DNA of 64,000 nucleotides. Origin: Paramoeba atlantica (taxonomy: Eukaryota; Protista; Discosea). Made by a program: the position numbers and the translations under genes. Each line of letters begins with the position of its first letter. The first letter of the stretch is position 1. The notes under the pieces are model-generated. The model did not search any database and was not told where the DNA came from. It was given only the letters and a program-made list of their open reading frames with translations. Shown piece by piece: positions 10,853 to 32,383 of this stretch. Where the stretch lies: contig CDRNVI010000045.1 of NCBI GenBank assembly GCA_977017575.1, forward strand, positions 186,001 to 250,000. Direction: 5' to 3'.

Positions 10853-13800
10853 ACTTATTTTCTTTTTCTTCGTTAACTCCATGGCAGACAGACCTCGCAA
10901 CGGTTTACTGTTCTGCTCACTCTGCGGCTCGAAGTTCGAGCCCCTTCTCCCCTCCCATCGGCTGTGTGCAAAGTGCTTCGACACCGCTCGATCTACGTCG
11001 CAATCCCAAAGGGACAAACATAAACATCAACCGCTTGGGCCCGCCAATGGCGGACACAAGCAGAATGCTCTATCTCAGGGTGCAACCCTCTCTCCGATCC
11101 CCGAGTATCCCCCGTGCAATTTTTGCACGAAGCCTTTCTCTCCCAGGCGACCCTTCCATCGCCTCTGCCCGGAATGTGTCGAGCTCAGGTCACAGCGCCA
11201 GGGCTCAGTAAACCCCCTTCCCTCATCCCGTCCAACCCCCAGGCGGGACCCCACACCAGGGCGCCGAGCTCGTTCGGCTTCCCGATCCCGCACCTCGGAC
11301 CGCGCCCCCGCGCAGAATCGTCCCTCGGCTAGGTCGTCGAGCATCCGTCCAGCTGAAGGACCGCGCACGAGATCCCGCTCGCGTGTCTCCTTCGCGCCGA
11401 ATGTCTCACCTAACTCGTCTGTCGCAAGCATGGCCAAGACTATGGCTTACCACAGCAATCTACCTCCTCCCAAAGGTACAGAAGGCCTTCAGGCCACCTC
11501 AATCCATAACCCCGACAAAGTTCCCTCCCACCAAGAGCAGCTTGCGATCATCGCCCAAAGAAACGCGGAGGTCCTGGCTGCGGTCTTCAAGCAGGAGCGC
11601 ACGGACGGTGTGCCACCTGCACTTCGACATGAAGTGGAGGCACATAGATTTTCGAGCGCTGCCCGGGCCTTGGAGGCCCAATACGTGAGGAAGCGCGATG
11701 CCATCTTTGACGAGTGGCTTTCCCTGATGTGTCACGACGCTCGTCAAGCACACAGAGAAAAACAACTCGTCGAGGACAAGGCACACCTGTGTCACACGTG
11801 TGGCCAAGTTTTCACAGACCAGAGGAAACTCATGCAGCATAGAGCCATACACGAGCAGGCTGCAATCAGATCAGCTGCCATTAAACTGTTCCAGGAGCAC
11901 CGCAAGGGGGTGTCAGAAATACTTAAGCAGCAGTGGACCTCTTGCGCAGCCGGCCACTCCGCCTGGTTCCAAGAGCTACAGCACATCGCGCTAACCTTCG
12001 GCGCCTCCCCCAGGCCTTCTGAAGCCAGGGGCTGTGACGTTGACGAGCCTCCTCCCCCCAGGGTAGATACCCCTTGGAATGAAAATCTCACCCACCCGGA
12101 GGTGAGCAGGTCCGCAGAAACTTGCCCGCCTCCCGCGCAGGACCCAAGTGACCTTACACGAGGACCACGCGGCGTTCGCAAGCAAAGCGCAACTCCCACC
12201 CATCCTGACGCCTCTTCCAACGAGAACGGAAGTACTCCCGACAATCTGCTAAACGTCACGCAAACCGAGCATGTGACTGGCAATTCGGCGAATACCACCG
12301 CATCGTCCCCAGCGGAACCCTGTAAGCACAAGTGTCTGAATAAACGTGAATGCTTAAACTTGTGCTGCAAGCGTCACTTAACTGCGCAAAGTATAACGGA
12401 TAGCGACACCGTAACATCACATACCGTTATGTCAAAGAAACGAAGGAATTTTGAAGTCTCCCCGCTTGCCATGGCCCGATCAATTATACTAGTATTCAGA
12501 ACTCTCTACAACATGCGGAATATTGGCATCATCATATCTAACGTCTTCAGATGGATATCTAGCCTCGCCGTTCACCTCCTAGTAGCACCCATCCGCGCAA
12601 TCCCGTCACCCAACGCCCTCAATCCTTTCCGTCGAAATGTTGGCACACAAAGTATCACGACAAAACCGTGTAGGCACATCTGTCTGAACAAAGTCACCTG
12701 CAAACACCCTTGTTGCAAACGTCATATACGACACTCCCAGAAGAAAGTCATAAATGTGGTGCCAACAAACAATGGACCCTTTGGTCACGTACTACTAGTC
12801 ATCATAAGGAACACTCAAACCCTATTGTCCCTATTAACTGGTTGGCTTTCTGAAGCAGCAAACCCATTACACATTGTCCAATGTATGAACATGGTATATG
12901 TGTGCACAGGTAGTACCATCAGGTTCATTACTTCTTCTTGCAGAAAAACGTATGACATTTTCCCATCGCCTCTGCTTTTACTGCCCCGGATACGAATAAT
13001 GCACGAGAAATTTTGTTCAAACGTCGCACGGTTGAAAAAGCAACCACTGTGCATGACCGCTCTTGACATCATGAAACTTGCACAACGAATAATTCTCTGG
13101 TATATCAGGCTTTTCTATATACAAGTAGACACTATGCCACAAAATGACGGAAAACCAGAACCCGCAACCACAAGCCCCACGAAACTATGCACATCATCCC
13201 AGCCATTCACGACTGCAGTCGAGAAAGAAAGCAATCCCTATTTACCAGCAAACCCAACAGTCACGCTTAACCACAATGAGATGTACGAGGTGAAAAAGCT
13301 GACGGAAAAGCAAGAATTAATCATGCCTTGTCCCAGGGAACAGGAAGGAGAAAACGATGAAGTCCCTGGCTGGGTATTTCAAAGCAGCGCGACACAGAAC
13401 CGGGACGAATCCGCACCACCTGACACAAACCATGAACCACGGCAAAAGCAATACCTTCACTTTGTCCAGAGCAGAGCCCGCCCCGTGAAAGTGCGAACAG
13501 TAGCAAACCTGATCTGGACATACTTTCCAGATATTCGAAGTGCCAGCGAATCTCCTCTCGTCCGGGCTAGAATAACCTCTCTCCAAGCAGCACAAGCGGC
13601 ACTCTCGAAAATGTTATCTGGTAAAAGCAACTCTCATGACTTGGTTGTCGAGCCTTCCACAACTGAAGAACTCATGGACCACCGCGGATGCGACTACATA
13701 CATATCGAAGAACAAAATAGTCAACACATCAGTCGGCATGCCAGCTGGACATCCCTTCTCCAAGATAATACACTTAAACTCAACGAGAAGTATGCAACAG

Positions 13801-16645
13801 CGGGAGCACTAGGCCGTGCAGTCATGAAGGCGCTTAACGGAATGGATATACCACATCTCAGACATCTACGCATTACAGTACATCGAAGACTGGAGGAAGC
13901 GGAAGAAGTCAGTTACGAACGTATCTCACGCAGAGAAGCATCACCGAGTCGCATTCAACAGAACCGTAGTGCACCGACACTGCGCACTGTACAGCCATGC
14001 CGCCACACGTGTCGAAACAAACTTGAGTGCGCACACCTATGTTGCAAAGTATTTGGGCCACCCTATGCACCAGGGAACGAAACCGGTTGTGAATCCCCAA
14101 CAACAGTACCCAATAACATACATTCCCAAGTTGAACCCTCCACGCCGACAGTGCAATCTGACGCCTCTCAAAGTCAAAAAGCAGTAGAACTCCTGCAAAA
14201 GCACAATGCAATACTTGGCGGGAAGGTTACCATACGACTCAGCGAAGAGCAATGGCGACAGGTTGAAGCGAGAGCAAGTGCACGTTGCAACGAACTTCTA
14301 AGCGATACAACGGACAGGAAGACAGCTATACGTAACGCGGAACTTCTTAGCGCCGCCCTAGCCGTATCTGCTTACGAAATAGCGACGGAAGCGAATCCGA
14401 CAAGGGGCTTCCTCATCAGAGCTAGCACCGGACACGCCCGACGAAGGTATCGACCACTCGCCACGGAGAGAGTCGCACAAGAACTGAAACACCATCTCAC
14501 AACCTTGAAAACTTCGCTACGCTATACGAGAAGTAGGACGGAACGAGACGAATTACGAGCACAAATCAAAGAATGTCGAAAGCTAGTCAGGATACGTGAG
14601 GAAGAAGCGACGAAACAAAGAGAAGAAATCGATCAGCGCTGGGCCTCCGAGCGATTTTCCAGAAATCCGTGGACAGCAGCTTCAGAAACGATCGACAAAC
14701 CTGACGCTAATGAAGTACAGAATACAACTTACCCGACCTGCGACCGGAACACCATAGAGACATACTTCGAGTCAAGCTTTAAACCTAGTGAAGAACTCTT
14801 CCAACTGCCTCCTCCAGATGTACTCGGACCAGGAGCCGCCCATCCCATGCATTGGGACCCAATCACGCGAGACGATGTCACAGCAGCCATCAATATGAAA
14901 CGGAACTCCAGCTCACCCGGTGCAGACACGATCACCAATCTGATTCTTAAGAAATGTCCATCCATGCATGATCAATTTGCTAAGGTATTCAATAATCTGA
15001 TGACTTTCTCGACCTGCCCTCCATCATGGAAAACTGCAATCACTAGGCTGATACATAAGAGCGGAGCACCGGAAAACCCCAAAAATTGGCGCCCCATTTC
15101 ACTGACGAGCGCCCTTGGTAAAGCGTTTCACACAATCATATCGCATCGCCTGACCCAACATCTTATTGGACACAATGTGATTGACCCGGAAATACAGAAA
15201 GGGTTTCTTCCCGAAATCAATGGGACATTGGAGCACACCCAAACTCTATGCACCCTCCTCCAGCACTACCAGCGACATAAACGACAGTACTGTCTTGCCC
15301 AATTGGACCTCACTAACGCCTTTGGTTCGATCCCGCATAACATTATACTAGCTTCCCTAGGTTGGGCAGGCATACCCTGCAACGTTGTCGACTACATCAA
15401 AGACAGCCTCACTGATGCACACATACGAGTTAAATGTTACGAAGGTCTAACGCGTCCCATACATGTAAAGAAGCATCCAGGAAGAGCAAAGGAAGCGTGC
15501 GAAAGGTCAAATCCGCCCAGCTGCACAGATAACCGATCATCTTAACGACCCACAGCGCGCACGACAAATACTCCGTGATGCCCACGAAGAACAAATGATT
15601 ACACGTCTACGACAACGTGCTCCTGTTGCTGCCCTCTGGTGGCAGTTTCCGTCAGACCCAGAAATGGCACAAGAATTTGCATCTGCCATCCAAGGGATCC
15701 GAAACGAGAAACTCTCGCGATTCATGTCCTCCGTCATGACTCTAACCCCCCTGCCCTCCCGAGTATCCCTTGCACAATGGGGTCGCAACTATCACTCTGA
15801 TACAAAATGTCCCATATGCCGAGACAAACCACAAACAACAAGACACGTCCTTTCATCATGCAACACATCCTTACAACAAGGGAGGTACACACTAAGACAC
15901 GACATGGTTCTCCGCGAGTTCGCACGACACGTACGCCAATCCCCTGCCACCGAAGCTTGCCACTTTGACCTCACGGGTGAACGGAACCCACCCCCGTGGT
16001 ACACCAGTAGCGACAGTTTACTGCGCCCGGATGGCTGGATCAAACTACGGAACGGGACCGAGTTCATCATTGAGCTAACTGTCCCGTGGGAGGAGAACTG
16101 CGAAAACGCACACCGGCGGAAGTCAGAGAAGTATAACTCACTTCTCCACGAGCGCAGAATCGAGAACCCGAACTGCTACGCCCTAGCGTTCGAGATCGGC
16201 GCACGGGGACTTCCTAGCGGATCCTGTCGCTATCTTGACGCCGTGTTCCAAGGGGAACGAAAACGAGCCAGATCATGCAGAGAAAGCATGAGTTTAATGG
16301 CTGGTCGGGCCAGCTATATTATCTGGGCTCGGAGGAACGAAGCTGAATGGACGGACGAGGAAAACCGCTCTGCTTGCTAAATAAAAAGGGTTATCCCGTT
16401 GTATGCGGGCCTTACCCTGAAAACTCTCTGCTATTATGCAATAGTATGAACAAACAAACCCTACCTACAGTCGCAGGAGGACTTTGCCTCCACCGAGAGT
16501 ATTTGGATATCGCTTTCAATCCCTCACCATGGGTCGTCCTACGCCCCCCACGTCTTGGTGTATGACGACACCGGGCACGGTGTGTTACAAACTGATGGCC
16601 ACATGTCAGAAGGGAACATCCCTTTCTACCTCTGTCGCGCCCTGG
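10853..16645 (+). mobile_element. HERO/NeSL-like RLE non-LTR retrotransposon, RT internally deleted
   Basis: ORF 10881-15545 has Zn fingers and RT motifs (SSPGADTI, NWRPISL, QKGF, LDLTNAFGSIPH) but breaks near 15468, before GVLQGD/ADD. ORF 15595-16380 has CPIC..HVLSSC, RHD, RPDG, IELTVPWE and KSEKY. Confidence 0.9.
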
Positions 16646-16658
16646 ACGATAAAGATAC
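16646..16658 (+). other. 5' half of a split SL exon
   Basis: ACGATAAAGATAC; the missing remainder AGTTTCTGTACCTTGTTG lies at 29011-29028. Confidence 0.85.
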
Positions 16659-16669
16659 ATTATCACAGG

Positions 16670-16742
16670 CTTCATAAACACGCTTGATACCGGTCCCAAG
16701 CCCGGCGTCGTCTTCTTAACAAGACGAAGTGTGAGGGTGAAG
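16670..16742 (+). ncRNA. Twister self-cleaving ribozyme (P1 type with P5)
   Basis: P1 CUUCA/UGAAG; L1 UAA and GAGGG; P2 ACAC/GUGU; P4 CCGG/CCGG with loop UCCCAAGC; pseudoknots CCC/GGG and GC/GC; P5 CGUCUU/AAGACG. Predicted cleavage between 16675 and 16676. Confidence 0.9.
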
Positions 16743-17091
16743 AGTTTTATTGTACGATAAGGTACGACTTTTTTTTTAATATATTTGTCCATCTCTTCGT
16801 TTGTTAAACATACAGATTTGTTGAACATACTGATTTGTTTGAACATACAGGTTTGTTGAATATACACACTATAATCCTTGGTTCCGACCCAAAGATAGGA
16901 TATAAATTTTATTTACATGTTGACATGCTATGTGGAACCGAGCCTGGCACTAAATTAGTGATTTTATTCCGGTTCGTTTTGGCCCTGACCGGGGAAAACA
17001 TACCGTTCGGCGCCAAAATGAACTACTTCGAGGAAATTTGTGACTCACGGTCGACGATTATTATTATTATTATAATAACAATTTATTATTT

Positions 17092-17518
17092 GCCTCGAGG
17101 TCTTTCGGGACTGACGGTTGGCACTTCACCTTGAGGTTCCTCGGAACTGACGGTTGGTGGTTATACTTTGCCTCGAGGTCCTTCGGGACTGACGGTTGGC
17201 ACTTCACCTCGAGGTTCTTCGGAACTGACGGTTGGTGGTTATACTTTGCCTCGAGGTCCTTCGGGACTGACGGTTGGCACTTCACCTCGAGGTTCTTCGG
17301 AACTGACGGTTGGTGGTTATACTTTGCCTCGAGGTCCTTCGGGACTGACGGTTGGCACTTCACCTCGGGGTTCTTCGGAACTGACGGTTGGTGGTTATAC
17401 TTTGCCTCGAGGTCCTTCGGGACTGACGGTTGGCACTTCGCCTCGAGGTTCTTCGGAATTGACGGTTGGTGGTTATACTTTGCCTCGAGGTCCTTCGGGA
17501 CTGACGGTTGGCACTTCA
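17092..17518 (+). repeat. Tandem array of 5.5 x 78-bp units (36+42-bp subunits), mostly with cUUCGg hairpins
   Basis: Alternating CCTCGAGGTCCTTCGGGACTGACGGTTGGCACTTCA and CCTCGAGGTTCTTCGGAACTGACGGTTGGTGGTTATACTTTG. Confidence 0.95.
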
Positions 17519-18290
17519 CTTCGAGTGATCATTGAGGATTGGCTTCTCGTAGTCGTAAATTTAATGATTATTGTAAGCAAATATTGCTGATCATCACACA
17601 GTACCACTGCTGTCTGTGTTGCTTTCCAGGGTACTGGAAGTAATGAAAAAAAATGGATAGAAAGAAAAAAAAATGGATTCGCCAGTGTGACGCACCTTAT
17701 ACGACTTGCGCAGTCGGGTCAGTTTTGCACTGCGTTCATTATTCCACGGATTTCGAATGCAATGCCTTTACGGCTACGCATCTGTGTGAAGTATCCCCGG
17801 ATGTTCAACTCCAGTGCACCACCCCATTGTCAACTCCAGCGCACCACTTTTTTCACCATAGTCGACCGTCATTCCTTTTTTCTGCGCCTCACCATAGTTG
17901 AACATCGTTCCTTTTTCCTTTCAACATAAAAACTTATCCAGAGTATTTAAAGAAAGTGTAATACAAGTGTAAGATCTGAGTAAGAAACTTAACGGCGCAT
18001 TTGTAGTGTAGATCCGAAGGATATTATAAAATAATTCTTCTTTATATAATTGATGGTGCATTGGAAATGAGAATACAGTTTTTAAGAAAAAGTGGTGCAC
18101 TGGAAATGACAAGAAAATTATTTTTTGGGAAAAAAAGTGGTGCGTTGGTGTTGACAATCCGCCATCTAATAAAAGATGCTCAACAGATTCCACGCCCCTT
18201 AGAGTTTTGTCTCACGTTTGAAAACCTAGAATGATGACAAGAAGGGGAGGAGGGAGCTGATCTGCGGTGCCAATGGGTATTCCTGTCACT

Positions 18291-18454
18291 GGGCTTGGTC
18301 CCGGTATCAAGGTGCTTATGAAGCCTGTGATAATGAGGGTGTTGCCAATCCCTGGTCAGTAATCGGCCCAGGGACATAGCAACTCCCCATTATCTCGGGC
18401 GTAGTAAACACGCCTTGGCTTGCCTGGCACTGAGATCAGCCATTGGAAAAAAAC
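18291..18454 (-). repeat. Internal complementary region (ICR) of the YR retrotransposon
   Basis: 18335-18454 is the reverse complement of 28891-29010 (2 mismatches in 120). 18291-18334 is the reverse complement of 16659-16703 (first 19 nt identical). The two parts abut with no gap. Confidence 0.9.
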
Positions 18455-18752
18455 AAAGACGAAAGAATAGAAAGCAGAAAAAAAAAATATACAGAAGGCG
18501 TATGTATAGATGAATACATTAGTTTCGCCGATTGCTTGAAGTAGTAAGGAAAAAGAGCGAGAGAGAAAACAGAGAGAAACAGGAATATGCTGACATAAAG
18601 CAGTCAGCAAGTATCCATATTCTGGCGAGCGTGAGGGTGGAAATACAGAAAGGGTGAATATAGAATGAGAGAGCAAAGATGACCAGGATAAGTCACAACC
18701 GTATCTAATCTATTAAAACATGCGTGGGAACTTGCTCTAAATTTTATTTCTT

Positions 18753-19583
18753 ATGCCGAAGAAACGACCCACCGTAGCTACCTCACTCCAAGCTTCACAA
18801 AGCCGCTCAGTTCCTATAGTCGGCCACACTCACCACTTTGACGCAAACGTCGATAGCGTAGTCGACCAGGCATGCTCGACGAAAACGAGCATAAAAATTT
18901 CTCTACGTTTTGAGCGCGCAGTCGATGTGAATCTCCTTGTCAAATTTATGGCGGAAATCAGCGAAGACGAATGCGCAAGTGCAATCATGGATTTCGTTGA
19001 AAAGGTATTAGGGGGAGAATCCCTCAGTGAAAAAGCAAGTTTTACAGCCAAACTTTTGGGTGTCCGCCGAACACAGGACGTCTCCGAATTCGAGAATTTG
19101 ATTGGAAACGAAGAACATCGAGGAATTTTGGTTTCCCTCATGCTGGACCCCCCGAAGGAGCCAAAGAAAATGAAAGCACGGGAAGGAGAAAAGGAGGACG
19201 GGCAACTTACCGTATGGACAGGCACGGAGAATCGTCCTCACCTTGGAGGGCAACTGTGGGAAGCAGTGCACAACCCGAAGTTTCAAAAATGGGCCGAAAG
19301 CTTTCTTCTAACCCGCTACGCTATTTTCTTCAAGGAGATGCTTACGCAAGCAGGAAAAGGTGTATCCCCCAAGGCGGCACAAGAAAACAAGGCGGTATCA
19401 ATAGCAGCTAACCATTTCCTTCTAGAACTCGCTGCTCATTTTCTTGTGTTCCGCGCCGATTTTGACGACGTAAAGAAAGAGAGAATCTCTTCTTCTTTGC
19501 CGCAAGAACGTCGGATTGCTCCCAGAGACCGACTCCGTAACTATACCGGAGACTCTTTTGAAGGCGAAATCCTTCCAAAATAG
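18753..19583 (+). CDS. Probable gag-like ORF of the YR retrotransposon
   Basis: 276-aa intact ORF upstream of the YR ORF; no motif recognised, so the call is positional only. Confidence 0.45.
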   Translation: MPKKRPTVATSLQASQSRSVPIVGHTHHFDANVDSVVDQACSTKTSIKISLRFERAVDVNLLVKFMAEISEDECASAIMDFVEKVLGGESLSEKASFTAKLLGVRRTQDVSEFENLIGNEEHRGILVSLMLDPPKEPKKMKAREGEKEDGQLTVWTGTENRPHLGGQLWEAVHNPKFQKWAESFLLTRYAIFFKEMLTQAGKGVSPKAAQENKAVSIAANHFLLELAAHFLVFRADFDDVKKERISSSLPQERRIAPRDRLRNYTGDSFEGEILPK

Positions 19584-20392
19584 TACTTCAGGCTATGGAC
19601 GGGGAGGCATGGTCCAAAACAACAGAAGAACATTTGGGCCGGATGTGCGTTATTTCAACCGCCCGCGACCAGTAAATTTGTATGCCCCTTGACCTTATCG
19701 TTCTAATCGAGAAGGGTTCGTCAAATGCCTAGAACGGCCAGAAAAGTTTTCTCGGGAAATGAACGATCGAAAGAATAAACATGAAAAGGGGCCGTGATTG
19801 CCGATCTTGGGGGCAATAGATGTATGTTTTAGTTTTTCTTAATCAGATTCATGTTTGGGCTGAACATAGAGCACGAATATTATTATTTGCTTGTGCAGAT
19901 CATTAGGATTGTGTGTATTTGTCATACAACGAGTGACACTCACACACAACAGACGCCTTTATACAGCATAGACATTGTGGAAAGAAAATGGGCTTTGCAC
20001 ATTACTTAGACGTTAAGTAATACATGTATAGTGAGGGAAAGTGTGATAATTATTCCCATCAGATTAACATACAGTGTATCTAGTACGTAGGTGCCTAATC
20101 ATTAAGCACAATTTGTTGGAATACCAAAAAGGGGCAAATGGGTGGCATCCAGATTAAAAGTAAGTCATAATATGGTGCAGTTTCTCCTTGAAAATCGGGG
20201 AAACCATAAGACAAAATGAACTGAATGAATAAGTGTGTCTACAACAAAACAGTCTGTTATTTCATCCGCTATTTTACACATGGAAAGTTAAATATATTAA
20301 ACTGGCCATTCCGTTGAAGATATGAGATTGCATACGGTATATGTAAATAAACCATGTAATCACACACATTTAGTATTTTTGCATACTTTTAG

Positions 20393-21269
20393 ATGCAGAA
20401 AGATTCTTGCGAAGGGTATCTGGCAGCTCTGGCATTAAAGTCGATTGCACCCGGAACGCGAAGGATGTACGAGGCCCGATTTGCTGCTTTACGAAAGTTT
20501 TGCAAGAACCGAGGATTCGAAAAAATAACGAAAGAAGCGTTCGGATGTTTTTTGTGGCATCACGCATCGGTTGGATGCGCCAAATCGACTTTTCAAGGTT
20601 ACTGCAGTGCCCTGCTCTTCTATCAGGAATGTCAAAGCTTTGACCTCGAAGCAGGTGAACGCCCCTGGGCAGGCGACCGCCTCATACTTCGGGCAGTGGA
20701 CGGGGCTGCCATTGAGGCAGAGCAGCATAGACAAGAAAAATGTCCCAGAGGCTATGTATCAGAAAATATGTTACACGAACTTGTACGGTGGGTCACACCC
20801 CGTGCTAACGGGCCGCAGCTCGCAAGAGCTTTTCGCGTGCAATACTACGCTGCTCTTCGACCCTGTGAAGAAGATACGTGGCGGGGATTTGCGTGTAGAA
20901 GGCTCTTGTTCTCATCTTCTCATCCGCCACGATAAAACAAAGAGTTACTCAACTGATAAGCAAAAGTGCAAACCTCTTACTCATGTTGCAACCGAAGAAG
21001 TGCGAAATGCCCTGCGTGACGTAACACATGGAGACCTTGCGTTTCCGGCGTACAAGAAAAGATCCACGAGTAAACTTGTAAAAAGAGCATCCACCGAATT
21101 GGGATGGCCATCTGGAGTGACTTTTGATGGAACTCACACTCTGAGACATGGTGGTACTGGGGCCATAGTAGAAAACGTAGCTGACATGATGTCCAGTGCA
21201 CTATCGGGCATGTCGAGACAGGTGAGACAGAAGCACTACTTAGCACCGCGTTCTCAAGTGCATGATTAG
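20393..21269 (+). pseudogene. Tyrosine recombinase with one frameshift near 20875
   Basis: YYAALRP (R), RHDKTK (K), GTHTLRHGG (HxxR) and RQKHY (Y) across ORFs 20393 and 20571. Confidence 0.88.
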
Positions 21270-21411
21270 AGAACGGAAAGAAACAAAAAGCCACTCGCGT
21301 GATTTTCTCCTATCATATTATCATACAGTTAATCTGCAGAGATTTGGTAAAGTGAATATCGGAAAATAATTCCGTTATCCGCGCACACAACGCGTTTAAT
21401 TCACTTTTAGT

Positions 21412-24400
21412 TCAAGCAACGTTTGAATTTGGGTCATAGATCCAGTTTACGTCACCGCGGTGCTGAAAAATTTGAAAACTTCCTCGCAGTGCGCTCTGGG
21501 TCATACTTTGTCGGCATGCATCGATGAGGCTATCGTTTCCAAGAAAAAGAGAGTTCAGAGCTCGAGCTGAGCTGTGGAGCTTCCCTCTTGCGCCTACTTC
21601 GAACACCAGAAGAAAGGTGGCTGGGTGCTCAAGCCTCCTGGAATGATAAATATTTGTATACTTGTTCATTCTCCTCCCAGGGGCAAGTGAGCTCTATGAT
21701 ATATTCTTCCCCGTTTGCCAGTTTCACCCAGCCGTCCGGTCGGAGCTCAGTGTCCAAGTTTGTGAGCCACGACGGAGTGGAGCGGAACTGAGGAAGATCA
21801 AAGTGCGCGAGTCTTGTTGCAGGAGAATTGGCCACACAGTATGCTAGGGTTTGGAGGACTAGATCATGCCGCAGGGTGTATCGGCCCTGTTCGAGTGATT
21901 TTGCACACCCGGAGAGGATATGGCGTGTGGTCTGCGTTTCGGTTCTGCATATCGGGCACTTGTCGCTGGTGTGGGTTGAAACGCCCCATTTGCGGAGTGA
22001 TGCCCTCGTAGGAAGGGGGGTCTGAGTAATAACTGATGCCGTAAATCTTGAGAGGCTCTCGCTTTTCAGATTACATAGTGCAGCGGCAAAATCCCTCGCT
22101 AGATCCGCCTCAGTGGCCATCCTGAACCATTGCCCAGCTACGGTCGTACGTCGTTGAACAGCTTGGGAAAGGTGACGCTCATATTCAGTTGCAAGTACTC
22201 TTCGGACATTACCGCCGTGGAGGCTTTGAATGTCAATTGAGGGTCGAATGTGCCCGGATTGTCTCTTCGCTTGTTCTCGACGAATACGTTCGCGCAATGA
22301 ATACTTGACAGCAGGATCCTTTGATTTCTCCATTTGCTGAGTAGTTTGTGCTGTGCATAAGAGCCACAGTTTCGACAAGCTCAGGAGGTTCCACCCGTGC
22401 TCGGAGTAGAGAAGTTCACTCGTGGCTGTTTTGGCGAGGTTGAGCCATTTACGGATCGCTTGTGTAGCGTACCTCTGAAGACGAAGCACGTGGTTGAACG
22501 AGAGGCAGGTATTCACAACAAGGGAATAACGAAGACGCGAGATGACACCCTGGTTGTATATCCAGAGTCGTGCGGGCAGGTCATGGGCACTATTCGTAAT
22601 ATTTTGTAGCCACATGCGCAGACGAGCTCGCAGTTTCTGGAAGAGAATCTTGCTTTGTTGTGCACCTGGAGCAAGCGTCATCCCTAAGAAGGTGCTTCCT
22701 TTGTCGCATATCTGGGGAATCGGAGCTCCATTGATCGTGAGCTGAGGATGCCGAGTCATATAACCCGAGTCTTGCGTCATTGACATGTGCTGAATTCGGC
22801 ACTTTTTAACGTTGAGGTTCATCCCAATGTCGGAAAGGCCTTTTACAAGGACATTGGTGGTATTTTGCATTTCCCTGGGGGTATTCGTAATGATGGTAAG
22901 GTCGTCGGCGAAGGCTTTGAGAAAGGTCTCTTTGTCATCCCATGTGATCCCATATTGTGGGCAGCTTGATCGAACGAAACGCAGAACCAACTCCATTGCA
23001 AGATTGAATAGTATGGGGGAGAGAGTATCGCCCTGCAATACACCTCGATCTATCGGGATGGGTTTTGTAAGACCTTCAGCGCACTTGATTTGAATGGATG
23101 CTTTCTCGTAGAGTTGTTCTATGTATTGAACGATAATTGGAGATACGCGCGCCCATTTTAGAGCCTGTAACAGCACAGTATGGGGTACGGACCCGAAAGC
23201 ATTTTTGATGTCGAACTGTGCTAGACAGTATTGTCGTTTGTGGCATCTTTGGTATTCGAGGAGTTCACATACAACTTGAGTGTGCTCTACAGTACCATTC
23301 ATGTGGGGGAGAAAACCTTTTTGTATCGACGTGTCTATGGCGTGAGAATCGAGGGCGTGATGGAGGATGCGATGACTTATGATTGAGTGAAAAAGTTTCC
23401 CGAGACAGCTGGTAAGGCTAATTGGGCGCCAGTTTTCCATGAGTTTGGTGTCGCCTCCTTTGTGGATCAGTCGGGTGACGGCCGTTTTCCATGTCGGCGG
23501 GCATACGCCGAATTTGAGTATGTCGTTGAATACCTGCGCGACGACCGAGTAGATGGAAGGGCAACGCTTTAACAAGATGTTGGTTATGGTATCTGACCCC
23601 GGGGCGGCCCCCGAACGTTTTGATGATATGGCTGCGGCAATGGTGGGTCCATCTATCTCGACCCATTCCATGTGTCCACGTGGTCTAGGTTCGGTAAACT
23701 CATCTGGTGGGATGCTGAATGTCCCGTCCGGTTTGGTCAAGGATGTCTCGAAGAAGCGTTTGACCTCCTGGATGGGCACTGTGGGATATAATGAGTCTTT
23801 CCCGTCGCGATCTGCATCGTGGTGGTCTAAGGACTCCCCTGCAGCTGTCCACGGGTTGCGTTGAAATCGAGTTTGAGCCCACCGTCGTTCGATTTCCATT
23901 TTTTGTAGGCGTGCTTCTTCCTCGTATAGTTTTAGCGCTTTGTGTGCTTCTTTTATCCTCCCTCTTTGGGCATTTCGCTCTGGGCCGTGCATAAAGGTCA
24001 GTGACCGTTTTAGTTGACGAACGTGTAGATTTAATGACTTGAGAGTACGGTCGATGGCAAGGGGGCGTGAGCTACGTTTGGACCTGCCTGTTCGGGTTCG
24101 AAGTAGAAACCCGCGTGTGGGGTTAATCTCTTTCGCAGTTTCGTAGACGGATACAGCCAAGATGGCAGAAATGACTTCAGCTTGGAACAGCGCGTCTTCT
24201 TTACTTCGCGCAGGGTGCATGAATGCATTGCAACGTCCTTCAATTCTTGAGATGGTGAGATCCCATTGGCTAGTGTCAAAGTGCACCAGGGCACGTCCAC
24301 CTTGAATGGTGCGGAATGTTTCAAGCATGCTCTCGAGCTCCGAGCGTGGACAGGGTGGTGTGGCATGCGATGCGTTTGTTCGTGGGGTTCGTTGGAGTAT

Positions 24401-26254
24401 AGTGTGGGCACCGTTGTGGTATGAGCGGTCTGAGATCGGATCTGGGCGTCGTTCAGTAGACATTGCGGCGTTTGCAGGATGCGGGGGAGAATCTGCGACG
24501 GGGGTTGTTGGAAAGCGGTCGGCGAGGGGCTCAGGTTGTGAGGATGGTTGAACTTCCTGGGGGGCAGGCAGTGCGGTCGGTTGGGTCGGTCTATCGAGTA
24601 TAAGGAGGTTTCGTACAGTCCAGGATATTGCAGAGCAGGCGATTTCTCCAGCTCTCACGAGCGTGCCTTTTTGGCAGCAGGCGTGTTGGCATTGCGATTT
24701 ATCTTTGCACTTATGCTTGCAGGGACGACGTGGTCTTGTGTCTCGTGATACGTCATTTTCGTTACTGGGGGACGGTTCGTTGGGGGCGGTGCCGGGAGGC
24801 TGGGTGTTGGGAAGTGGAATTTCTCCCATGGTCCCTTCCGTGGTCTCCGTTCGCGTGGTTGGCGTCTCTGCTGTGGGAATTTCGGTTACATCCGTGGAAG
24901 CCGATGTCCACGGAATTAGATTTCGCAATGACCATGAGTGGTTTCTATTCGCCGTTGGACTGATGCGGACTCCCTCCTTGCAACATTTGTGCTTACATAG
25001 AGTCTTATTGCCACACTGATGCTTGCATGGACGGTAGTTGTCCCGGTTGGCCGTCTCTGTTGCGTTAGGATCGCTGTTGCTCCCTTGTGGCGGTGGTTGT
25101 GTGTGGGGCATAAGTCGTGTTGGTCTTGCGAGACTCCTTTCCGAGCTGTTAGTTTCTATTACATGTGCGTGTATGCGATTTTCCGTGTTCGTGCATGTGA
25201 TAGTCGTCATATCGGGGTGGGCATCGATCGAGTGGGCAGGGGTAAAGTTCGTATGTGTAACCGGTTGATCCATTGGAGGCTGTGCGGAATGCAAGTCGTG
25301 GTGTACCATCAGTTCGTCTTTGGATACGAGCACACCAATTTTGCAACAACTGTGTAGACATTTTGTTTTGTCGCGACGGGTGTGCTTGCAAGGTCTTCGC
25401 GTCTCCGTATTCGTATGGTGACGGATGGAGTTCGTTGTTGTGACAAGTGGTGCCTCCCTTTCCGTACTATTCGGTCCCACGGCGGTAGCTTCTGCGGGCG
25501 GATTAACTACGGCGGTGACTTTACAGCACGCATGCAGGCATGAGTTTTTGTCGCGACATTTGTGGTTGCATGGTTGACGTGGCTTTGTAGGTTGTGATGA
25601 GGTTTCCGGTCCTGTTGGCTGTTCCCGAATCCTGTATGCAGCATCGTAGGTGATTTGATGTTGTAGCCAAGTCCCGCTTGTGGACTCAGTGCTTCGCGCT
25701 ATATGTTTTATTTCATACTGGGACAGTCCAGGGACATTGTCGCCGTTTAGTTTTTTCATCACTGCCTTGCTTAAGTTTTGGGGAGACGAATAATGCGAGT
25801 CGAGACACATCTCCGAGTCGTGAAAAGCGGACGTCCAGCTGGCGTGGCGGAAAGTGCGGTGAGGTAGTTTCTTCTCTTTATATTCCAGGTATTCGCATGC
25901 ACCATGGTCCATAACATTCTGTACTGTGCATTTACCGACGACTAGCCCGTCACTTCTTTTGTTCTCTGTTTTTAGAGTCTTGTTTAGGGAAGCTTCGGCA
26001 GTGTGTACACTCGAGAAGAACTTCTTATCGGTAAGAAAGACAGCCGCGGCGTGTGCATCCGGAAAATATGACCACTGAACGCTTGAAGCGAGTCGAAGTT
26101 TCACTGGTACCGCGCGACTCTGGATGAAGTGGAAATTCTGTTGCTTCGCGCTGACAGGTCCTCGAGGAAGGCCGTCGTGCGCGTCGGGAGCAGATGTGAT
26201 AACATTGGAGGACATGCTCCGAGAGATAAGTTTAGTACAAAATTGAAAATAATT
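21412..26254 (-). mobile_element. HERO/NeSL-like RLE non-LTR retrotransposon inserted antisense in the YR element
   Basis: 1543-aa ORF with NWRPISL, GVLQGDTLSP, AFADD, CPIC..HILSGC, RHD, RPDG and IELTCPWE; a small deletion/frameshift near 21655 removes part of the RLE. Confidence 0.92.
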
Positions 26255-26279
26255 CAACAAGGTACAGAAACTGTATCTT
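26255..26279 (-). other. Spliced-leader exon-like copy (5'-truncated) heading the minus-strand element
   Basis: The reverse complement reads AAGATACAGTTTCTGTACCTTGTTG followed by AATTATTTT. Confidence 0.88.
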
Positions 26280-26575
26280 CTTCTGCGTAATTAGTTCATA
26301 ATATAGTTAGTTCCATGTAAACTAGTTTCTTGGAGACTTGTTTCACTAAATTAAAGATACTAAAAGTTTGGTTTTCAAGTCGAAACGTTAAGTGAAAGAA
26401 GTTGGAAGCTATAAAAAAGAGAGTCGTTACAAATCGAGTGTTACAACTATGAGACCTTCCTCCAATAATGTCCTAAATCTCTACGTGAAATCATACGTGT
26501 CTTGTACAAGTTTGTCTTGTACAACGATTATTTCTTATGTGGCGCACAGCTATGCATTCCGCCATTTGATTACTA

Positions 26576-28333
26576 ATGAATAAACGTAGGTTTATTCGTC
26601 TTTTGACATTGGGATATAATATAGTATTAATGAACGAACCCGCGGACAACCTAGAATATGGAACGGCATATGGTGCAGTCCTCCAAAAGTCCTGTACACT
26701 AAAGCAACGGGCCCTTGATCCCATTTCGGTTGCAGGTCGTCTTCATATCGATACTCTATGCGCTATTGCATCTCGAAGCACGTACACGTGGGGAAAAAAG
26801 TGCCTTACCATACTCACTAATGAACACTCATTTCGTCTTTTCACGGAATTCGAAGGCTTTCGTGGGAAACTTGGGGTACATTCTGAAGCAAAATGGCGTG
26901 ATCACTTAGCTGAGCTTTGTTCGTATGAAGTACTGCGCAGAGTTCAGGATTTTCGTAATGATTTTCGCCTTTATTTACGATACTTTGAAGTGCCAAAAGA
27001 TGAAATTTCATCTCGGAGCATCGTAGATTGCACCCCTATAAACGATAGATGCGCTACTCCCCCTAGGCTAAACTTTCCAGCTCTCGCAGAAGTCACACAC
27101 ATCTTATCATGCTTTCCAGGTGGAAAATTCTTGATTGCGGACATTCGTCATTTCTTTCATCAAATACGAATCCCATCAGGCTTGGGTCGCATATTCTCAA
27201 TAAAATGCGAGGACAAGACTTTCGAGTTGCGAGTTCTCCCAATGGGGTTCTCTTGGGCTCCTTATCTTGCCCAATGTCTGGCATGGATAATTGTTTTAGC
27301 GGCTTGTACTACAGGTTATGAGATGTTACCTGTCCGAGACACATCTGAATCACCTCCGGCATTCGCGTGGGCGATAAATAAGAAGACAAAAGCAAAACAA
27401 GGTGCAGTATTTGTTTGGATTGACAATGTGTTGGTCATATCTAGCAACGAAGGTTTTTTAAGTCAGTTAAGATCGCAACTCATGAAAAGCATGAAGAGAC
27501 CGCCAACGGGTTGCAACGTCGAATGGAAATATATCGACGGCCCATGTGATCAAGCCCTATTTTTAGGAATAGAGTTCTCTTGGGAAATAGGCAATTTATT
27601 TTGGAAACACGCTGAATCTAACATTGCTCGTTGGAGAGTACTAGAAACGGTGTCACCTACGACCGTGCGAGACATAAAGAGGGTGATAGGTGTGATCATG
27701 TGGGATACAATGGTCACCCAATCCTCCTTTGCTTCAGTCTATGATGTTCGAATGATCGCGAAAGAGATATCGCACCTATCCGAAGAAAGCTTTTACAAAT
27801 TGAAGAGCGAAGACTTAAAGCTCTTGAGCATGCATGTAGTGCGTATATTGAGTAACAAGAGAAGTTGCGCATTACCGCCAATTCCAATTTCCCATCTCGT
27901 TCTTGCTTTTTCGGACGCATCTTCGACCCACACTGGTTTCTGCGTACTCCGTCAATCGGGAGAAATTTTGCTGCAAGAAAGTATTCCAATACTTGTATCG
28001 GGAGATATATACGATGCGGAGTTCTCTGCGGCAAAAGCCGCCTTAATCAAAGGGTGGGAACTTGCTCCCCATGTGATTCTAGGATGCGATAATATGGACG
28101 TTCTGCGGGCACTCCAAAAGCGCACATCAGTTCGACATTCAATTTGTCAGCAGCTCCTAGACATCGAAGAAAGGAGAAAGAGTGGGCTATCGTTTCGCAT
28201 CTTTTATCTCAAATCTAAGGAGAATCCAGCAGACGGCCTAACGCGGGAAGAGTTCGGATTCCGAGTCAAAGACGGTCTTTTGCCCGGAGGAGTCGAAATC
28301 GCTCTCTCACATATGGACCCAATCATAATCTGA
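26576..28333 (+). CDS. DIRS/VIPER-type reverse transcriptase-RNase H
   Basis: DIRHFFHQI, VLPMGFSWAP, WIDN and FLGIEF (RT); FSDAS, AEF, CDN and SKENPADGLTR (RNase H). Confidence 0.88.
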   Translation: MNKRRFIRLLTLGYNIVLMNEPADNLEYGTAYGAVLQKSCTLKQRALDPISVAGRLHIDTLCAIASRSTYTWGKKCLTILTNEHSFRLFTEFEGFRGKLGVHSEAKWRDHLAELCSYEVLRRVQDFRNDFRLYLRYFEVPKDEISSRSIVDCTPINDRCATPPRLNFPALAEVTHILSCFPGGKFLIADIRHFFHQIRIPSGLGRIFSIKCEDKTFELRVLPMGFSWAPYLAQCLAWIIVLAACTTGYEMLPVRDTSESPPAFAWAINKKTKAKQGAVFVWIDNVLVISSNEGFLSQLRSQLMKSMKRPPTGCNVEWKYIDGPCDQALFLGIEFSWEIGNLFWKHAESNIARWRVLETVSPTTVRDIKRVIGVIMWDTMVTQSSFASVYDVRMIAKEISHLSEESFYKLKSEDLKLLSMHVVRILSNKRSCALPPIPISHLVLAFSDASSTHTGFCVLRQSGEILLQESIPILVSGDIYDAEFSAAKAALIKGWELAPHVILGCDNMDVLRALQKRTSVRHSICQQLLDIEERRKSGLSFRIFYLKSKENPADGLTREEFGFRVKDGLLPGGVEIALSHMDPIII

Positions 28334-29010
28334 GATTGACAAGTAAACGAAGCTGCGAAGGCGAATGGACTACCCTAAAAAAAAATGAACCAGTATATTC
28401 ATCTCTATTGCTCCAGTTACGGAAAATCCGTAGCCAACTCGTCTAAGGTCCACGCACAGAGTGAGAGTAAAAACCCCGTCAGCATTCGAGTCGAATGATT
28501 AGACATAATAAGAAAATGCAGAATCTAAAATTTACAGGTAATTTGCTTTTACTGGGTTTTTGTTTATGACCATGTAAATATTTTGAAATACAAAATCTTT
28601 TAAGACCGCATAATAAGCTATGCGCGTGTTATTTTTCCTTTTTTATGTTTTCAGTACATGCAATTTATAATTTAGTTTTAGTATGAACTAATTTAATCCC
28701 ACTATCATTTCATGTCGAATTAGGCTCACAAGTTGCTGCACTTGTTCTAGAGCTCCCTGGTCCCATAACCCAGCCTTTTTGACGCACGAATGAAATCGTG
28801 TTGCCGGGGAGATCACTTGGTTGTGGGAACGGGCCCCTTAAGTGGGAAGCCCCTGGGCTGAGAAAGGAGGCCTCTAACGAAAAAAAAAGGGTTTTTTTCC
28901 AATGGCTGATCTCAGTGCCAGGCAAGACAAGGCGTGTTTACTACGCCCGAGATAATGGGGAGTTGCTATGTCCCTGGGCCGATTACTGATCAGGGATTGG
29001 CAACACCCTC

Positions 29011-29028
29011 AGTTTCTGTACCTTGTTG
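29011..29028 (+). other. 3' half of the split SL exon
   Basis: AGTTTCTGTACCTTGTTG immediately after the element end CAACACCCTC. Confidence 0.88.
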
Positions 29029-30757
29029 AATTATTTCTCTTTTCCTTCCTATTGACTTTACATACGCCAATGAATGACCCTCGATCAGGGGGGAAGCTCT
29101 GGTGTTGTCACTGTGGCACACGTTTTGTCCCACATAACCCCGCCCACCGATTTTGCGCGAAATGCTCGCCCAAATTCTCACAGCCCCCATTACATCCCAC
29201 CATTCGCTCGTACCCTTCCGTCCAGCCACGCGCGGCGACGAACCCTCCAAGCCCACCCAGCACTCAAAATCATGTGCTGCTTGCTCCGCCCCGTTCTTTC
29301 CCGCTAGGCCTTACTTCCGGTGGTGTGAGTCCTGCGCACTGTCTTGTTCAAACACTTCTCAGGGTCTCACTAAACCCTGCGAAGTGTGTTCGTCCCCTTT
29401 CAGCCCTAAACGCCCCTATTTCAATCGCTGTGATGCGTGCGACTTCGAATCCCCTCATGCCCCACGAGACCACACCGGAACTCCGTCCTCGAAGCCTCCC
29501 CGATTTATGGGAACGTCAAAGCTCCCCTCACGCCCTCCTGCCAGAACTGCAACTTCCTTCGCTTCACACACCGAACGGCCGAAGAAAACATTCGTCCAAG
29601 CACTAAAGGGGGTAACGCGCAGTAACTACCCCTTCTCCTCTAGCGAAAGCGAAACCCCTACGGGGAAGACGAAACACATTCTTTCATTGGAGGAACGTTT
29701 TTCCCTGTTTGAGAAGCTAAATAAAGAATCACATTCCACTCTAAAGAGAAACCGGGTCCCTGAAAACGGTTTCATAGCGGACATAGAGCACGAGATCCGT
29801 TCAACCGAAAAAGAACTCTCCTTCGTTCAATTAGTCGCCCAGTAGCTCGTCTCCAGACACAATCTCCTTCTCCAAAACCTTAACGCAAGACGCGAGTGGC
29901 ATCTCGCTCTTGCCCGAAAGCTCTCCATTATAGAGAAAAAGGGACACGTTTGCAACACCTGTTCAAAGCAACTGATGGATGCCGACCAACTGAGTGAGCA
30001 CAAGAAAGTACACCTTGAACACGACATCAAGGTTGCGTTTCGCAAAGCTATGGACGCCAAAAGAAGTATCCTGTTAGAGGAAAGCTCCGAGATTGTAGAG
30101 AAAGTAGAGACCTTCCACCGGGAACTTCAAGCCCTCACAAGAACGCCGTCTGCTAACTCGCCTTTTATGCAAAAGGCCGAGAGAAACATGAAGGAAACTG
30201 AATTGGAGGACTGGATCGGCCCGGGCTGGGATGACGATCTAGATGACGACAGCACCGTCGACGTTACAATTCGTCTCCTTCTTTGCCCATCGCCTGGGGA
30301 AAAGCTCACCTTCCCAGGTGTTCCGTCTCACACCCATCTGGATTCAGTTAGAGACAAGATCGCGCTCTGTTTGGGGCTCCGCAGTGAGCTCGTGACACTC
30401 GTTGATTCAGCAACCGGAGCCACTATGGATTTAACCGAGAAGCTCAGCAACATATCGCCCCTAGTCACTTTAGGCACTGCTCTTCGGATACCTTACAACG
30501 CCGCAAAGTCGTCAGGAAACAGAGTCCTCATTTACGGATACCCGACAGGTGAGACGTCCATCACTGTCCCCTCCAGCGTGCCTAATAACAAATTATCGGT
30601 TGCTATATGTTCACATTTAGGTATCGACCCAGAATTCGCCCCCGCGTGGTGCGAAGTGCCCTCCCCCTCAGGACCGCACTGGTGTTTCACGCCCAGCGAG
30701 AAGCTTATCGCGAACTCAGGGTGGAGCAAGACCCAGGTAGATATCGGTCTTTTACGA

Positions 30758-31828: not shown

Positions 31829-32383
31829 ATAAAGATACAGTTTCTGTACCTTGTTGGTACATTTTGCTAGCCCTTCCTTTCTTTTCCCGGAAACGGGCAT
31901 ACATTTTCCTTTTAATGCCCGTTTCCGGCTGACGGCTAGCGGGAACTGTCCCTCTTTGTCGTGGAAGTAGGGGACGTACTTCCGACTTTTCACCCCTCAC
32001 CGGCTCACTCCTTGAGTGAGTTTTCTTCCCTCCCCGGCTTTCTTCTTCTCGCGCCTGTCTCTTCCCGGGAGCTATGCGCCATGGTGGCCTCCCTTGAGGA
32101 CCACTGGGCGTGACTCTGCCTCGCATTATCGCGAGGCAGCGGTCGGTCGCAGTGCGCCCCTCCGGCTGCGTAAAGAGGTGGTGAGTTGCCTGGACCGCCT
32201 CTACCGACTGGGACCGAGTCGGTTGCAGTACGCCCCTCCGGCTGCGTAAAGAGAGGCGAGTTGCCTGGACCTCTCTACCGACAGAGTCCGCGTCGAACCC
32301 CCTTTGGCGACATCCGTTGTGGGCGGATTATGTGCCGATGATATCGGCCGTCGCATTAAGGGGATTATCTCTGCGCCAAAGAG
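31829..32383 (+). ncRNA. SL RNA-like, highly structured insert (SL exon, GT donor, hairpins)
   Basis: ATAAAGATACAGTTTCTGTACCTTGTTG then GTACA; the only SL copy here followed by GT; TGTAC/GTACA stem; several perfect hairpins. Confidence 0.55.

Follow-up and report, generated by a model that had tools for sequence, protein, structure and literature searches.

Fixed insertion into the spliced-leader (SL) exon, in one orientation and into a multicopy target, is characteristic of CRE1/CRE2, SLACS and CZAR of trypanosomatids and of NeSL-1 of nematodes. These elements integrate by target-primed reverse transcription with a restriction-like endonuclease, and have target duplications and poly(A) tails. 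The SL-specific LINEs of trypanosomatids insert between nt 11 and 12 of SL RNA genes. To our knowledge, only such endonuclease-type LINE elements were previously known to target the SL, and our literature search found no paper on an SL-targeting retroelement with a tyrosine recombinase (YR).

Among YR retrotransposons (order DIRS sensu Wicker), DIRS-1 of Dictyostelium discoideum prefers its own copies and centromeres. [quoted passage not shown] The DIRS-1 ICR is experimentally required for retrotransposition (PMC7192593). A different order, gag-like, YR, RT/RH, has been described for VIPER and TATE (PMC12278014). TATE, from Leishmania and other kinetoplastids, occupies a fixed position in the telomeric hexamer (GGG^TTA, with ^ marking the junction) without target duplication (PMC6681497, PMC12278014); its direct repeats are split (A1...B1A2B2), and its copies are clustered in tandem within telomeric repeats. 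VIPER of Trypanosoma cruzi, with its short derivative SIRE, also has split direct repeats, and no target specificity, ICR or ribozyme has been reported for it.

The stretch of DNA analysed here (64,000 nucleotides, hereafter the window) contains a 12.35-kb insert at 16659-29010 within an SL sequence. Comparison with related copies throughout the assembly makes it very probable that this insert represents a composite, dead copy of a YR retrotransposon of ~6.9 kb, whose recombinase would integrate sequence-specifically and in one orientation at the C^A of ...AAGATAC^AGTTTCTGTACC..., at about SL nt 20/21. That the insert is composite and dead is directly observed from its features, listed below in window coordinates.

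16645-16658, plus strand: 5' half of the split SL relic (GACGATAAAGATAC), the left target flank; the same half-site is found beside other copies
16659-16703, plus strand: left terminus of the YR element, with its complement in the ICR at 18291-18335
16671-16741, plus strand: Twister-P1-like ribozyme (37.4 bits, E 5e-6, under the Rfam gathering score of 67.2)
17005-17603, plus strand: left-arm array of tandem 78-bp repeats, which differ in number among copies
17796-18163, no strand assigned: secondary 368-bp insertion that other copies lack; it contains inverted repeats of 33 nt, and its ends are ambiguous by 3 bp
18291-18454, minus strand: ICR, which carries in reverse complement the right end (28891-29010) joined to the left end (16659-16703)
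18753-19583, plus strand: ORF1, gag-like by position only, 276 aa here (truncated) and 347 aa in uninterrupted copies
20393-21269, plus strand: tyrosine recombinase gene, in two frames here (20393-20935 and 20571-21269)
21313-26280, minus strand: nested non-LTR retrotransposon of 4,968 bp, with a 1543-aa ORF containing RVT_1 and zf-RVT
26576-28333, plus strand: putative RT/RNase H ORF of the YR element itself, 585 aa without interruption; the C30 copy is 97% identical
28891-29010, plus strand: right terminus, with its complement in the ICR at 18336-18454 (inverted repeat of 126 nt, 97%)
29011-29028, plus strand: 3' half of the split SL relic (AGTTTCTGTACCTTGTTG), which forms the right target flank and heads a CRE-like LINE

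The left junction, at 16658/16659, reads ...GACGATAAAGATAC^ATTATCACAGG and the right junction, at 29010/29011, reads ...CAACACCCTC^AGTTTCTGTACCTTGTTG, in letters and coordinates exactly as given in a preliminary description of this locus. The insert thus lies between GATAC and AGTTTC. Rejoining of the flanks yields GACGATAAAGATACAGTTTCTGTACCTTGTTG, identical except for base 1 to the SL heads at 10821, 32874 and 47840 of the window. The preliminary description regarded the restored sequence as a perfect SL exon; the SL is indeed rejoined without target duplication, as in every copy examined, but it is a 5'-truncated relic (about nt 8-38 of the 38-nt exon) that heads a CRE-like LINE and does not belong to an SL RNA gene. 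A 151-nt contig from an independent public run covers 16568-16718 with zero differences to the window, which excludes an assembly artefact at the left junction. The assignment of the SL halves to the element itself was rejected, as the junction in the ICR lacks them. A search allowing up to 3 mismatches found no empty paralogue in which the left flank of the window copy continues into an intact SL.

The excess of this insert over the uninterrupted copies is made up of the nested LINE and the extra 368 bp, the latter being bypassed by a skip joint (17792>18164) present in two runs. The nested LINE stands in place of the host-element sequence CCTTAG, and its own 5' end is a 5'-truncated SL copy (GAAGATACAGTTTCTGTACCTTGTTG). 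Its large minus-strand RT ORF was considered as a gene of the YR element and rejected. Of the gag-like, YR and RT/RNase H content described earlier for the insert, part of the apparent RT content is that of the nested LINE. Short non-autonomous derivatives also occur: a 3.0-kb copy (L066), a 4.3-kb copy (L065) and a 490-bp family.

The ICR holds the circle junction CCCTC^ATTATC in inverted orientation, and an ICR matching both extreme termini is also found in the relatives L090 and L091. Apart from their complements in the ICR, the two ends of the window copy share no inverted repeats, and no direct terminal repeats were found in it. Its structure is neither plain DIRS1-like nor plain VIPER-like. 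The earlier label of DIRS/VIPER-like holds for the VIPER/TATE gene order and for the DIRS1-type ICR, but long inverted terminal repeats and split direct repeats are both lacking. Like DIRS-1, the element combines an ICR with YR integration and the absence of target duplication, yet it lacks ITRs, carries the ICR upstream of gag, follows the order gag-YR-RT/RH and has one exact target sequence. With VIPER it shares the gene order, a euglenozoan host and short non-autonomous derivatives. TATE, compared by description, is likewise a euglenozoan YR retrotransposon with gag-YR-RT/RH and a fixed site in a short multicopy sequence; the present element differs in its inverted ICR, the absence of direct terminal repeats, the absence of head-to-tail junctions in the assembly and its SL target. 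In contrast to the SL-specific LINEs, it encodes a YR, inserts at about nt 20/21, makes no duplication and occupies, in the assembly, only retroposed SL relics. Its ends are defined by the ICR, without poly(A) or features of a restriction-like endonuclease or target-primed mode.

The gene order gag-like, YR, RT/RH is seen in L061, L090 and L091. In the window copy both gag and YR are frameshifted, whereas YR is intact in the uninterrupted copies, where a 293-aa form has R156, K183, H250, R253 and Y284. From 214 homologues, an alignment of 60 shows R156 and Y284 to be invariant and K183, H250, R253 and H254 nearly invariant, in an R-K-HxxR-Y signature. The fold predicted from this alignment (pLDDT 94.8) has Cre recombinase as its best match (E 5.7e-9); an earlier model based on only 5 aligned sequences was too poor for use (pLDDT 52). 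The Pfam matches of the YR protein itself are sub-threshold, and 14 of the 60 homologues match Phage_integrase. Signature and model together indicate a Cre-like YR, which is complete in the uninterrupted copies. The RT/RNase H ORF matches RVT_1 (E 7.7e-5) and RVT_3 (E 2.3e-3), both under the gathering scores, and its closest Atlas clusters are euglenozoan RT-like proteins. RT motif C is xDN rather than YxDD in 8/8 aligned homologues. A word-based protein search returned 6 matches each for YR and RT, none of them named, and phmmer comparison of both with PDB sequences gave no meaningful matches. No relatives of ORF1 were found in Pfam or Atlas, and no methyltransferase domain was found with Pfam.

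A Twister-P1-like fold (RF03160) overlaps the left terminus. In this match stem P3 is missing and an additional hairpin is inserted; at the gathering level, Rfam has no match in the whole window. The core (UAA, CCGGUCCCAAGCCCGG and GAGGG) is invariant across 19 distinct left ends, in which 91.4% of cells in P1, P2 and P4 are paired, compared to 29-51% when the partners are slid; compensatory changes are seen in 7 of the pairs. At the right end (28300-29100), a search at the E-value level gave no ribozyme, only chance snoRNA-like matches. The predicted cleavage, between U16675 and A16676, would leave the element's RNA without its first 17 nt. Non-LTR retrotransposons of Schistosoma mansoni are described as having a 5' self-cleaving twister-variant ribozyme that releases the element RNA from the upstream co-transcript (PMC8501958). 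This twister variant and the HDV-like ribozymes of R2 and L1Tc are 5' self-cleaving ribozymes that free the element RNA, as predicted for the present candidate. However, those carriers are LINEs, whereas here the carrier is a YR element, the predicted cut is 17 nt inside the element and, unlike in the S. mansoni, R2 and L1Tc elements, the nucleotides that it would remove are kept in the ICR. No paper joining a twister ribozyme with YR retrotransposons was found in the literature.

The specificity for SL was evaluated on fossil copies in one genome, identified as kinetoplastid-type euglenozoan by its SL and SL RNA gene; this SL sequence was found in no paper. There are 700 exact SL 23-mers in 45.7 Mb, so that a random insertion would match an SL in this orientation with a probability of about 8e-6. 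Exact right termini number 27 genome-wide, with 14 in ICRs, 11 followed by AGTTTC and 2 others; leaving out the 14 intact ICRs and 1 mutated ICR, AGTTTC adjoins 11 of 12. At least nine insertions with distinct outer flanks, counted with duplicate pairs collapsed, split the SL at the identical C^A in a single orientation. The element is co-oriented with the SL and the position in SL copies is always GATAC^AGTTTC. On the left, the 5' half of the SL, ending ...ATAAAGATAC, is present in at least eight differently flanked copies; on the right, the copies read AGTTTCTGTACCTTGTTG and then diverge after TTG into at least eight different sequences. For the insertion at C30:769600, an empty paralogue of the left flank (L070) has the SL head intact. 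The single off-target copy lies at a look-alike site, AACTATC^AGTTTATGG, which has CAGTTT.TG in common with the SL. Relatives of the same layout insert at other targets. The occupied SL copies are the retroposed SL heads of LINEs and SINEs, of which about 700 are dispersed in the genome; the element was found in none of the 34 tandem SL RNA genes (with GTATG intron), for which the chance expectation is only about 0.5. The earlier proposal of an undescribed SL-specific YR retrotransposon is supported by these data, since a search with both termini places the other copies, with the one off-target exception, in the SL at the same C^A and not at unrelated sites.

Other explanations of this pattern have been considered. 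One ancestral insertion might have been multiplied by segmental duplication, haplotig assembly or co-retrotransposition within an SL-headed LINE, with no integration specificity. The raw copy count is indeed partly duplication, because near-identical pairs on two contigs (C45/C54, C19/C43, C70/C44 and C9/C4) have the same flanks. However, the insertions left after collapsing these pairs differ in sequence directly outside the SL on both sides, where LINE heads from several families, SINEs of two types and other sequences are seen, and most copies have no flank homology beyond the SL. Element subfamilies with termini 80-100% identical occur in SL without exception. As the 5' ribozyme would also cut a full-length composite RNA, co-retrotransposition is disfavoured, and this explanation as a whole appears extremely improbable. 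Efficient recombination with short homology is known in kinetoplastid-type organisms, and the abundance of SL copies would further help homologous recombination or gene conversion to spread an occupied allele, by host repair instead of the YR. It is nevertheless very unlikely, considering that the homology arms are just about 10-20 nt on the left (about 10 nt in SINE heads) and 18 nt on the right, that the off-target copy is in a non-SL site resembling the core only, and that position and orientation are invariant.

We assign a similarly low probability to the possibility that a short core such as AC^AG suffices and that SL relics are over-represented since selection removes insertions elsewhere. 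In more distant families that share the junction core (CTC^ATTATCAC), the left flanks are not SL and mostly end in AC, and relatives appear to pick targets that begin with 7 nt similar to the first 7 of the relative itself, as a short core would allow. But the window and the genome are rich in other dead repeats, which would be equally neutral, and even so 11/12 exact right termini outside ICRs are in SL; sister families do survive at non-SL sites.

For the favoured reading, site-specific integration by the YR, the following pathway may be proposed. Transcripts would begin in upstream DNA and read into the element; its twister-like ribozyme at the 5' end would then remove the upstream RNA and, with it, the element's first 17 nt. 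No RNA run that contains the region was found. Following reverse transcription, both ends could be restored and joined on the ICR as splint or template, as shown genetically for DIRS-1, and the YR would carry out recombination between these ends and the SL. For elements of this class a double-stranded circle has yet to be established, because DIRS-1 cDNA was found to be mostly linear and single-stranded (Malicki et al., PMC7192593). No head-to-tail or circle junction with the true left-end variant CATAAACACGC (the ICR variant being CATAAGCACC) is present in the assembly. The SL may serve as a lox-like site, with 7-bp inverted arms AAGATAC/GTACCTT (6/7 symmetric) around a 7-bp spacer, AGTTTCT, and the junction at the left edge of the spacer. 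Hundreds of dispersed, dispensable SL relics would provide a safe harbour.

It is conceivable, though rather doubtful, that the recombinase, with or without ORF1, reads the conserved palindromic core of the euglenozoan SL (AAGATAC-AGTTTCT-GTACCTT) as a natural lox-like site and reads its own joined ends through unrelated arms, in an element of a new structural group (left arm-ICR-gag-YR-RT) in which the twister trims the RNA and the ICR replaces the trimmed nucleotides. Some points count against the favoured reading itself. At the crossover the circle junction and the SL are identical in only 2 bp, the central CA noted in the preliminary description; the 7-nt stretches rightward, the inferred spacers, match at 4/7. 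The sequences beside the element's junction are unlike the SL arms, leaving unexplained how one YR reads both sites. Strand exchange over a 7-bp heterologous spacer would also predict mixed junction types, whereas all copies are of one type.

Site-specific retrotransposons reveal how mobile DNA locates safe places. Insertion into one exact 20-30-bp sequence in a single orientation, in at least nine independent cases, would represent a convergent solution to SL targeting by a different enzyme. With it, a natural and defined DNA target would be at hand for the recombinase of a eukaryotic retroelement, a class in which target recognition is essentially unstudied. As a second-order effect, the SL-headed LINEs and SINEs have supplied another element with landing sites by the hundred. 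A 5' self-cleaving ribozyme, combined with an ICR that stores the removed nucleotides, would give a concrete and testable reason for the DIRS-type ICR. If the lox-like reading is true, a eukaryotic YR would recombine two dissimilar sites with almost no overlap homology.

The insert splits spliced-leader (SL) sequence at GATAC|AGTTTC, and the letters of both junctions are exact as given in the preliminary description: ...GACGATAAAGATAC|ATTATCACAGG at 16658/16659 on the left and ...GGCAACACCCTC|AGTTTCTGTACCTTGTTG at 29010/29011 on the right. Joining the two flanks yields a full SL copy except its first base, with no base duplicated. Restoration of the SL on excision, as first proposed, thus agrees with the full copies, (A)ACGATAAAGATACAGTTTCTGTACCTTGTTG, found in the window at 10821, 32874 and 47840. 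The AGTTTCTGTACC motif occurs 9 times in the window versus 0.25 expected. A contig from an independent public run covers 16568-16718 without difference, which indicates that the left junction is real DNA and not a misassembly.

The 45.7-Mb assembly, in which the window occupies C45:186001-250000, was searched with both termini and the flanks were tabulated. Both termini are repeated in the genome. Exact matches to the right terminus GATTRGCAACACCCTC number 27. Of these, 14 lie in internal complementary regions (ICRs), where ATTATC comes next, 11 continue into AGTTTC, one lies in a mutated ICR and one has a non-SL flank. The right flanks run on as AGTTTCTGTACCTTGTTG and then into at least eight different sequences, among them LINE heads of several families, two SL-headed SINE types and others. 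On the left, among copies whose termini share 80-100% identity, the flanks finish in the SL 5' half (acgataaagatac, aaataaagatac, acgataaggtac and gatataagatac), with a different sequence upstream of each. Near-identical copies occur in pairs on two contigs (C45/C54, C19/C43, C70/C44 and C9/C4), which are probably haplotigs or segmental duplicates. Once these pairs are collapsed, at least nine independent SL insertions remain, all at the same bond and in one orientation. The SL 23-mer GATACAGTTTCTGTACCTTGTTG is present 700 times in the genome, and the probability of a random oriented insertion at the exact SL bond is ~8e-6, so that at least nine such insertions cannot have arisen by chance. 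The SL specificity that had been proposed from one copy is supported genome-wide.

At a further locus (C3:184360), an intact SL head stands behind the same upstream sequence as the insertion at C30:769600, and this locus is an empty paralogue of that site. One copy, on C19/C43 and also in a second public assembly, is located at the non-SL site AACTATC|AGTTTATGG, which has C|AGTTT.TG in common with the SL; an enzyme that recognizes sequence would be expected to leave such an off-target insertion now and then. Two rearranged loci were also noted. In C30:383010-386031, at ~1500-2040 and downstream of the C30:377586-384525 copy, a 34-nt right-end piece, the SL 3' half and ~400 nt of a LINE head are duplicated once in tandem, which may be the trace of a transcript or template switch from the element right end into a LINE. 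In C237:7390-10411, at ~1480-1560, the right end lies in an SL-headed SINE, only 38 nt from an inverted ICR junction; the locus is a palindrome-like derivative that has lost much of the element.

Within the insert, segment 18291-18454 reads, in reverse complement, as the right end (28891-29010) fused to the left end (16659-16703). It is a DIRS-type ICR storing the circle junction ...CACCCTC|ATTATCAC...; joined ends with the true left-end variant would read ...CACCCTC|ATTATCACAGGCTTCATAAACACGC, distinct from the ICR-stored form. Uninterrupted copies elsewhere in the genome (L061 at C30:377586-384525, L062 and L063) are 6.9 kb long. Compared to these, the window copy has two additional pieces, 17796-18163 (368 bp) and 21313-26280 (4,968 bp), the latter of which takes the place of six element bases and is a nested LINE whose 5' end is a 5'-truncated SL copy, GAAGATACAGTTTCTGTACCTTGTTG. 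The target of the nested LINE is non-SL, and it has no poly(A) tail. The 368-bp piece occurs only here and in the C54 twin of this copy; its 33-nt internal inverted repeats (17826-17858 / 18126-18158) and a 3 bp junction ambiguity make it a possible small element of MITE-like type. The gene set of the element, read from L061, comprises ORF1 (347 aa), the recombinase (293 aa) and RT/RNase H (585 aa). The insert had earlier been described as encoding a gag-like protein, a tyrosine recombinase (YR) and RT/RNase H; all three are recovered from L061, but some of the apparent RT content belongs to the nested LINE. In the window copy the RT ORF has stayed open and shares 97% identity with its L061 counterpart. 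This copy is nevertheless dead, since its ORF1 is shortened to 276 aa and its recombinase is split into two frames.

Retroelement features of the window
21313-26280, minus strand: nested non-LTR retrotransposon, 1543-aa ORF with RVT_1 and zf-RVT
10051-10082, 10821-10852, 32874-32905, 44160-44191, 47840-47871, 47996-48027: SL copies heading retroelements
32942-35680, 40280-43767, 44305-47250, 48062-52085, 55982-59247: CRE-like LINE family
35781-39313: APE/RNase H LINE

The window is dense with CRE-like and other LINE copies, each starting with the SL followed by AATTATTTTC. Nearly all of its retroelement units start with an SL copy, an A(A/C)TTATTTTC-rich leader and ATGG. The SL split by the insert is the head of a CRE-like element, and its 5' half adjoins the 3' end of the LINE at 10821-16644. 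Since the nested LINE has brought an SL head into a non-SL site, such heads travel with LINE RNA and are dispersed genome-wide. SL RNA genes read AACTTTAACGATAAAGATACAGTTTCTGTACCTTGTTG|GTATGAGAAGC... and are arranged in tandem arrays, with 34 exact copies in the genome. The element was found in none of these 34 genes, an absence that is uninformative because only ~0.5 hits are expected from their share of sites. The arrays (C97, C107, C74 and C11) have a period of ~2.56 kb, and some neighbours are 7.3-7.7 kb apart, which suggests ~5 kb insertions within some array units. About 111 other SL copies run into GTAC..., lack the SL nucleotides before about nt 11-12 and stand behind unrelated sequences, which agrees with an SL-headed SINE family; the remaining copies are mostly LINE heads. 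One of the ~111 is an SL-headed SINE-like insert at 31829-32383 (ATAAAGATACAGTTTCTGTACCTTGTTG|GTACATTTTGC...), which interrupts a CRE-like element downstream of the YR insertion. As far as the assembly shows, the YR element resides in SL relics, that is, retroposed SL copies. It thus targets the SL as a DNA sequence, wherever located.

The recombinase is complete and Cre-like in the uninterrupted copies, and an exhaustive HMMER search returned 214 relatives. When 60 of these were aligned, R156 and Y284 proved invariant and K183, H250, R253 and H254 nearly so, a pattern that corresponds to the tyrosine-recombinase signature. Its own Pfam matches are sub-threshold, while Phage_integrase is matched by 14 of the 60 relatives. 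The structure predicted with this alignment (pLDDT 94.8) most closely matches, among PDB entries, chains of Cre recombinase along its whole length (E 5.7e-9, probability 1.00); XerH and lambda integrase come next. The RT (window 26576-28333; L061:4794-6551) gives weak RVT_1 and RVT_3 matches, and its nearest Atlas clusters are euglenozoan. Its motif C is xDN (WIDN) instead of the usual YxDD in 8/8 aligned homologues, with D283 and N284 invariant down to 20% identity, metagenomic sequences included. ORF1, for which Pfam and the Atlas gave no relatives, is gag-like by position only; its C-terminal tail is basic.

An Rfam search at the E-value level gave a twister-P1-like match at 16671-16741 (E 5e-6), whose 37.4 bits fall short of the 67.2 gathering score. 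It contains both the twister hallmark CCGGUCCCAAGCCCGG and GAGGG. In a comparison of 19 distinct left ends drawn from several families, 91.4% of cells preserve the pairing of stems P1, P2 and P4 and of an inserted hairpin, versus 29-51% in slid controls, with compensatory changes in 7 pairs. A 5' ribozyme is probable, and no twister ribozyme in a YR element came up in the literature searched. The twister family cleaves at U^AA. The predicted cut, between U16675 and A16676, would detach any upstream transcript along with the element's first 17 nt. Because these 17 nt are kept as complement in the ICR, the ICR could put back what the 5' end has lost and bridge the two ends. At ribozyme core positions, the ICR-stored version is not identical to the true left end. 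In DIRS-1, retrotransposition has been shown experimentally to require the ICR (PMC7192593). The DIRS-1 cDNA found in that study was mostly linear and single-stranded (PMC7192593), so the molecule that integrates need not be a double-stranded circle.

The copies show a fixed position and orientation of the insert, no target duplication and a stored circle junction. At the junction the SL reads AAGATAC-AGTTTCT-GTACCTT, two 7-bp inverted arms (6/7 symmetric) around a 7-bp spacer, a layout that matches the geometry of classical YR core sites; the insertion junction is the left edge of this spacer. In the SL, YR cleavage would fall at C|A on the top strand and 7 nt rightward, at T|G, on the bottom strand. 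Relatives that use other targets show a similarity between the 7 nt that open the right flank and the 7 nt that open the element (6/7 in L091, 5/7 in a 490-bp family and 4/7 in L090), consistent with a 7-bp overlap region. For the SL family the match is 4/7 (ATTATCA in the element, AGTTTCT in the SL), and across the crossover only CA is identical. However, the arms at the element's own junction are unlike those of the SL, and the junction type is identical in all copies, although a heterologous spacer should yield mixed types.

VIPER and TATE share the gene order gag-YR-RT/RH with the element but have split direct repeats (PMC12278014, PMC6681497), which it lacks. DIRS1 has a similar ICR; the element differs from it in having no inverted terminal repeats, in the ICR lying upstream of gag and in gene order. 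TATE provides a precedent for a site-specific YR retroelement, with telomeric hexamers as its target. The known SL-specific elements are RLE LINEs. Full-text searches on the spliced leader together with tyrosine recombinase or DIRS gave no report of an SL-targeting YR element. A right-end block, CTCAGTGCCAGGCAAGNCAAGGCGTGTTTACTACGCC (window 28891-28960; L090:6481-6560), is conserved between families with 52% recombinase identity and matches no Rfam family. The original reading, an SL-exon-specific YR retrotransposon, is supported and sharpened: the element is a site-specific YR retrotransposon whose target is new, with a hybrid structure and a probable 5' ribozyme. Its layout of left arm, ICR, gag, YR, RT/RH and right end is also found in L090, a 52%-identical family in a second assembly, and in L091, a ~30%-identical element on a metagenomic scaffold, and thus marks a wider group.
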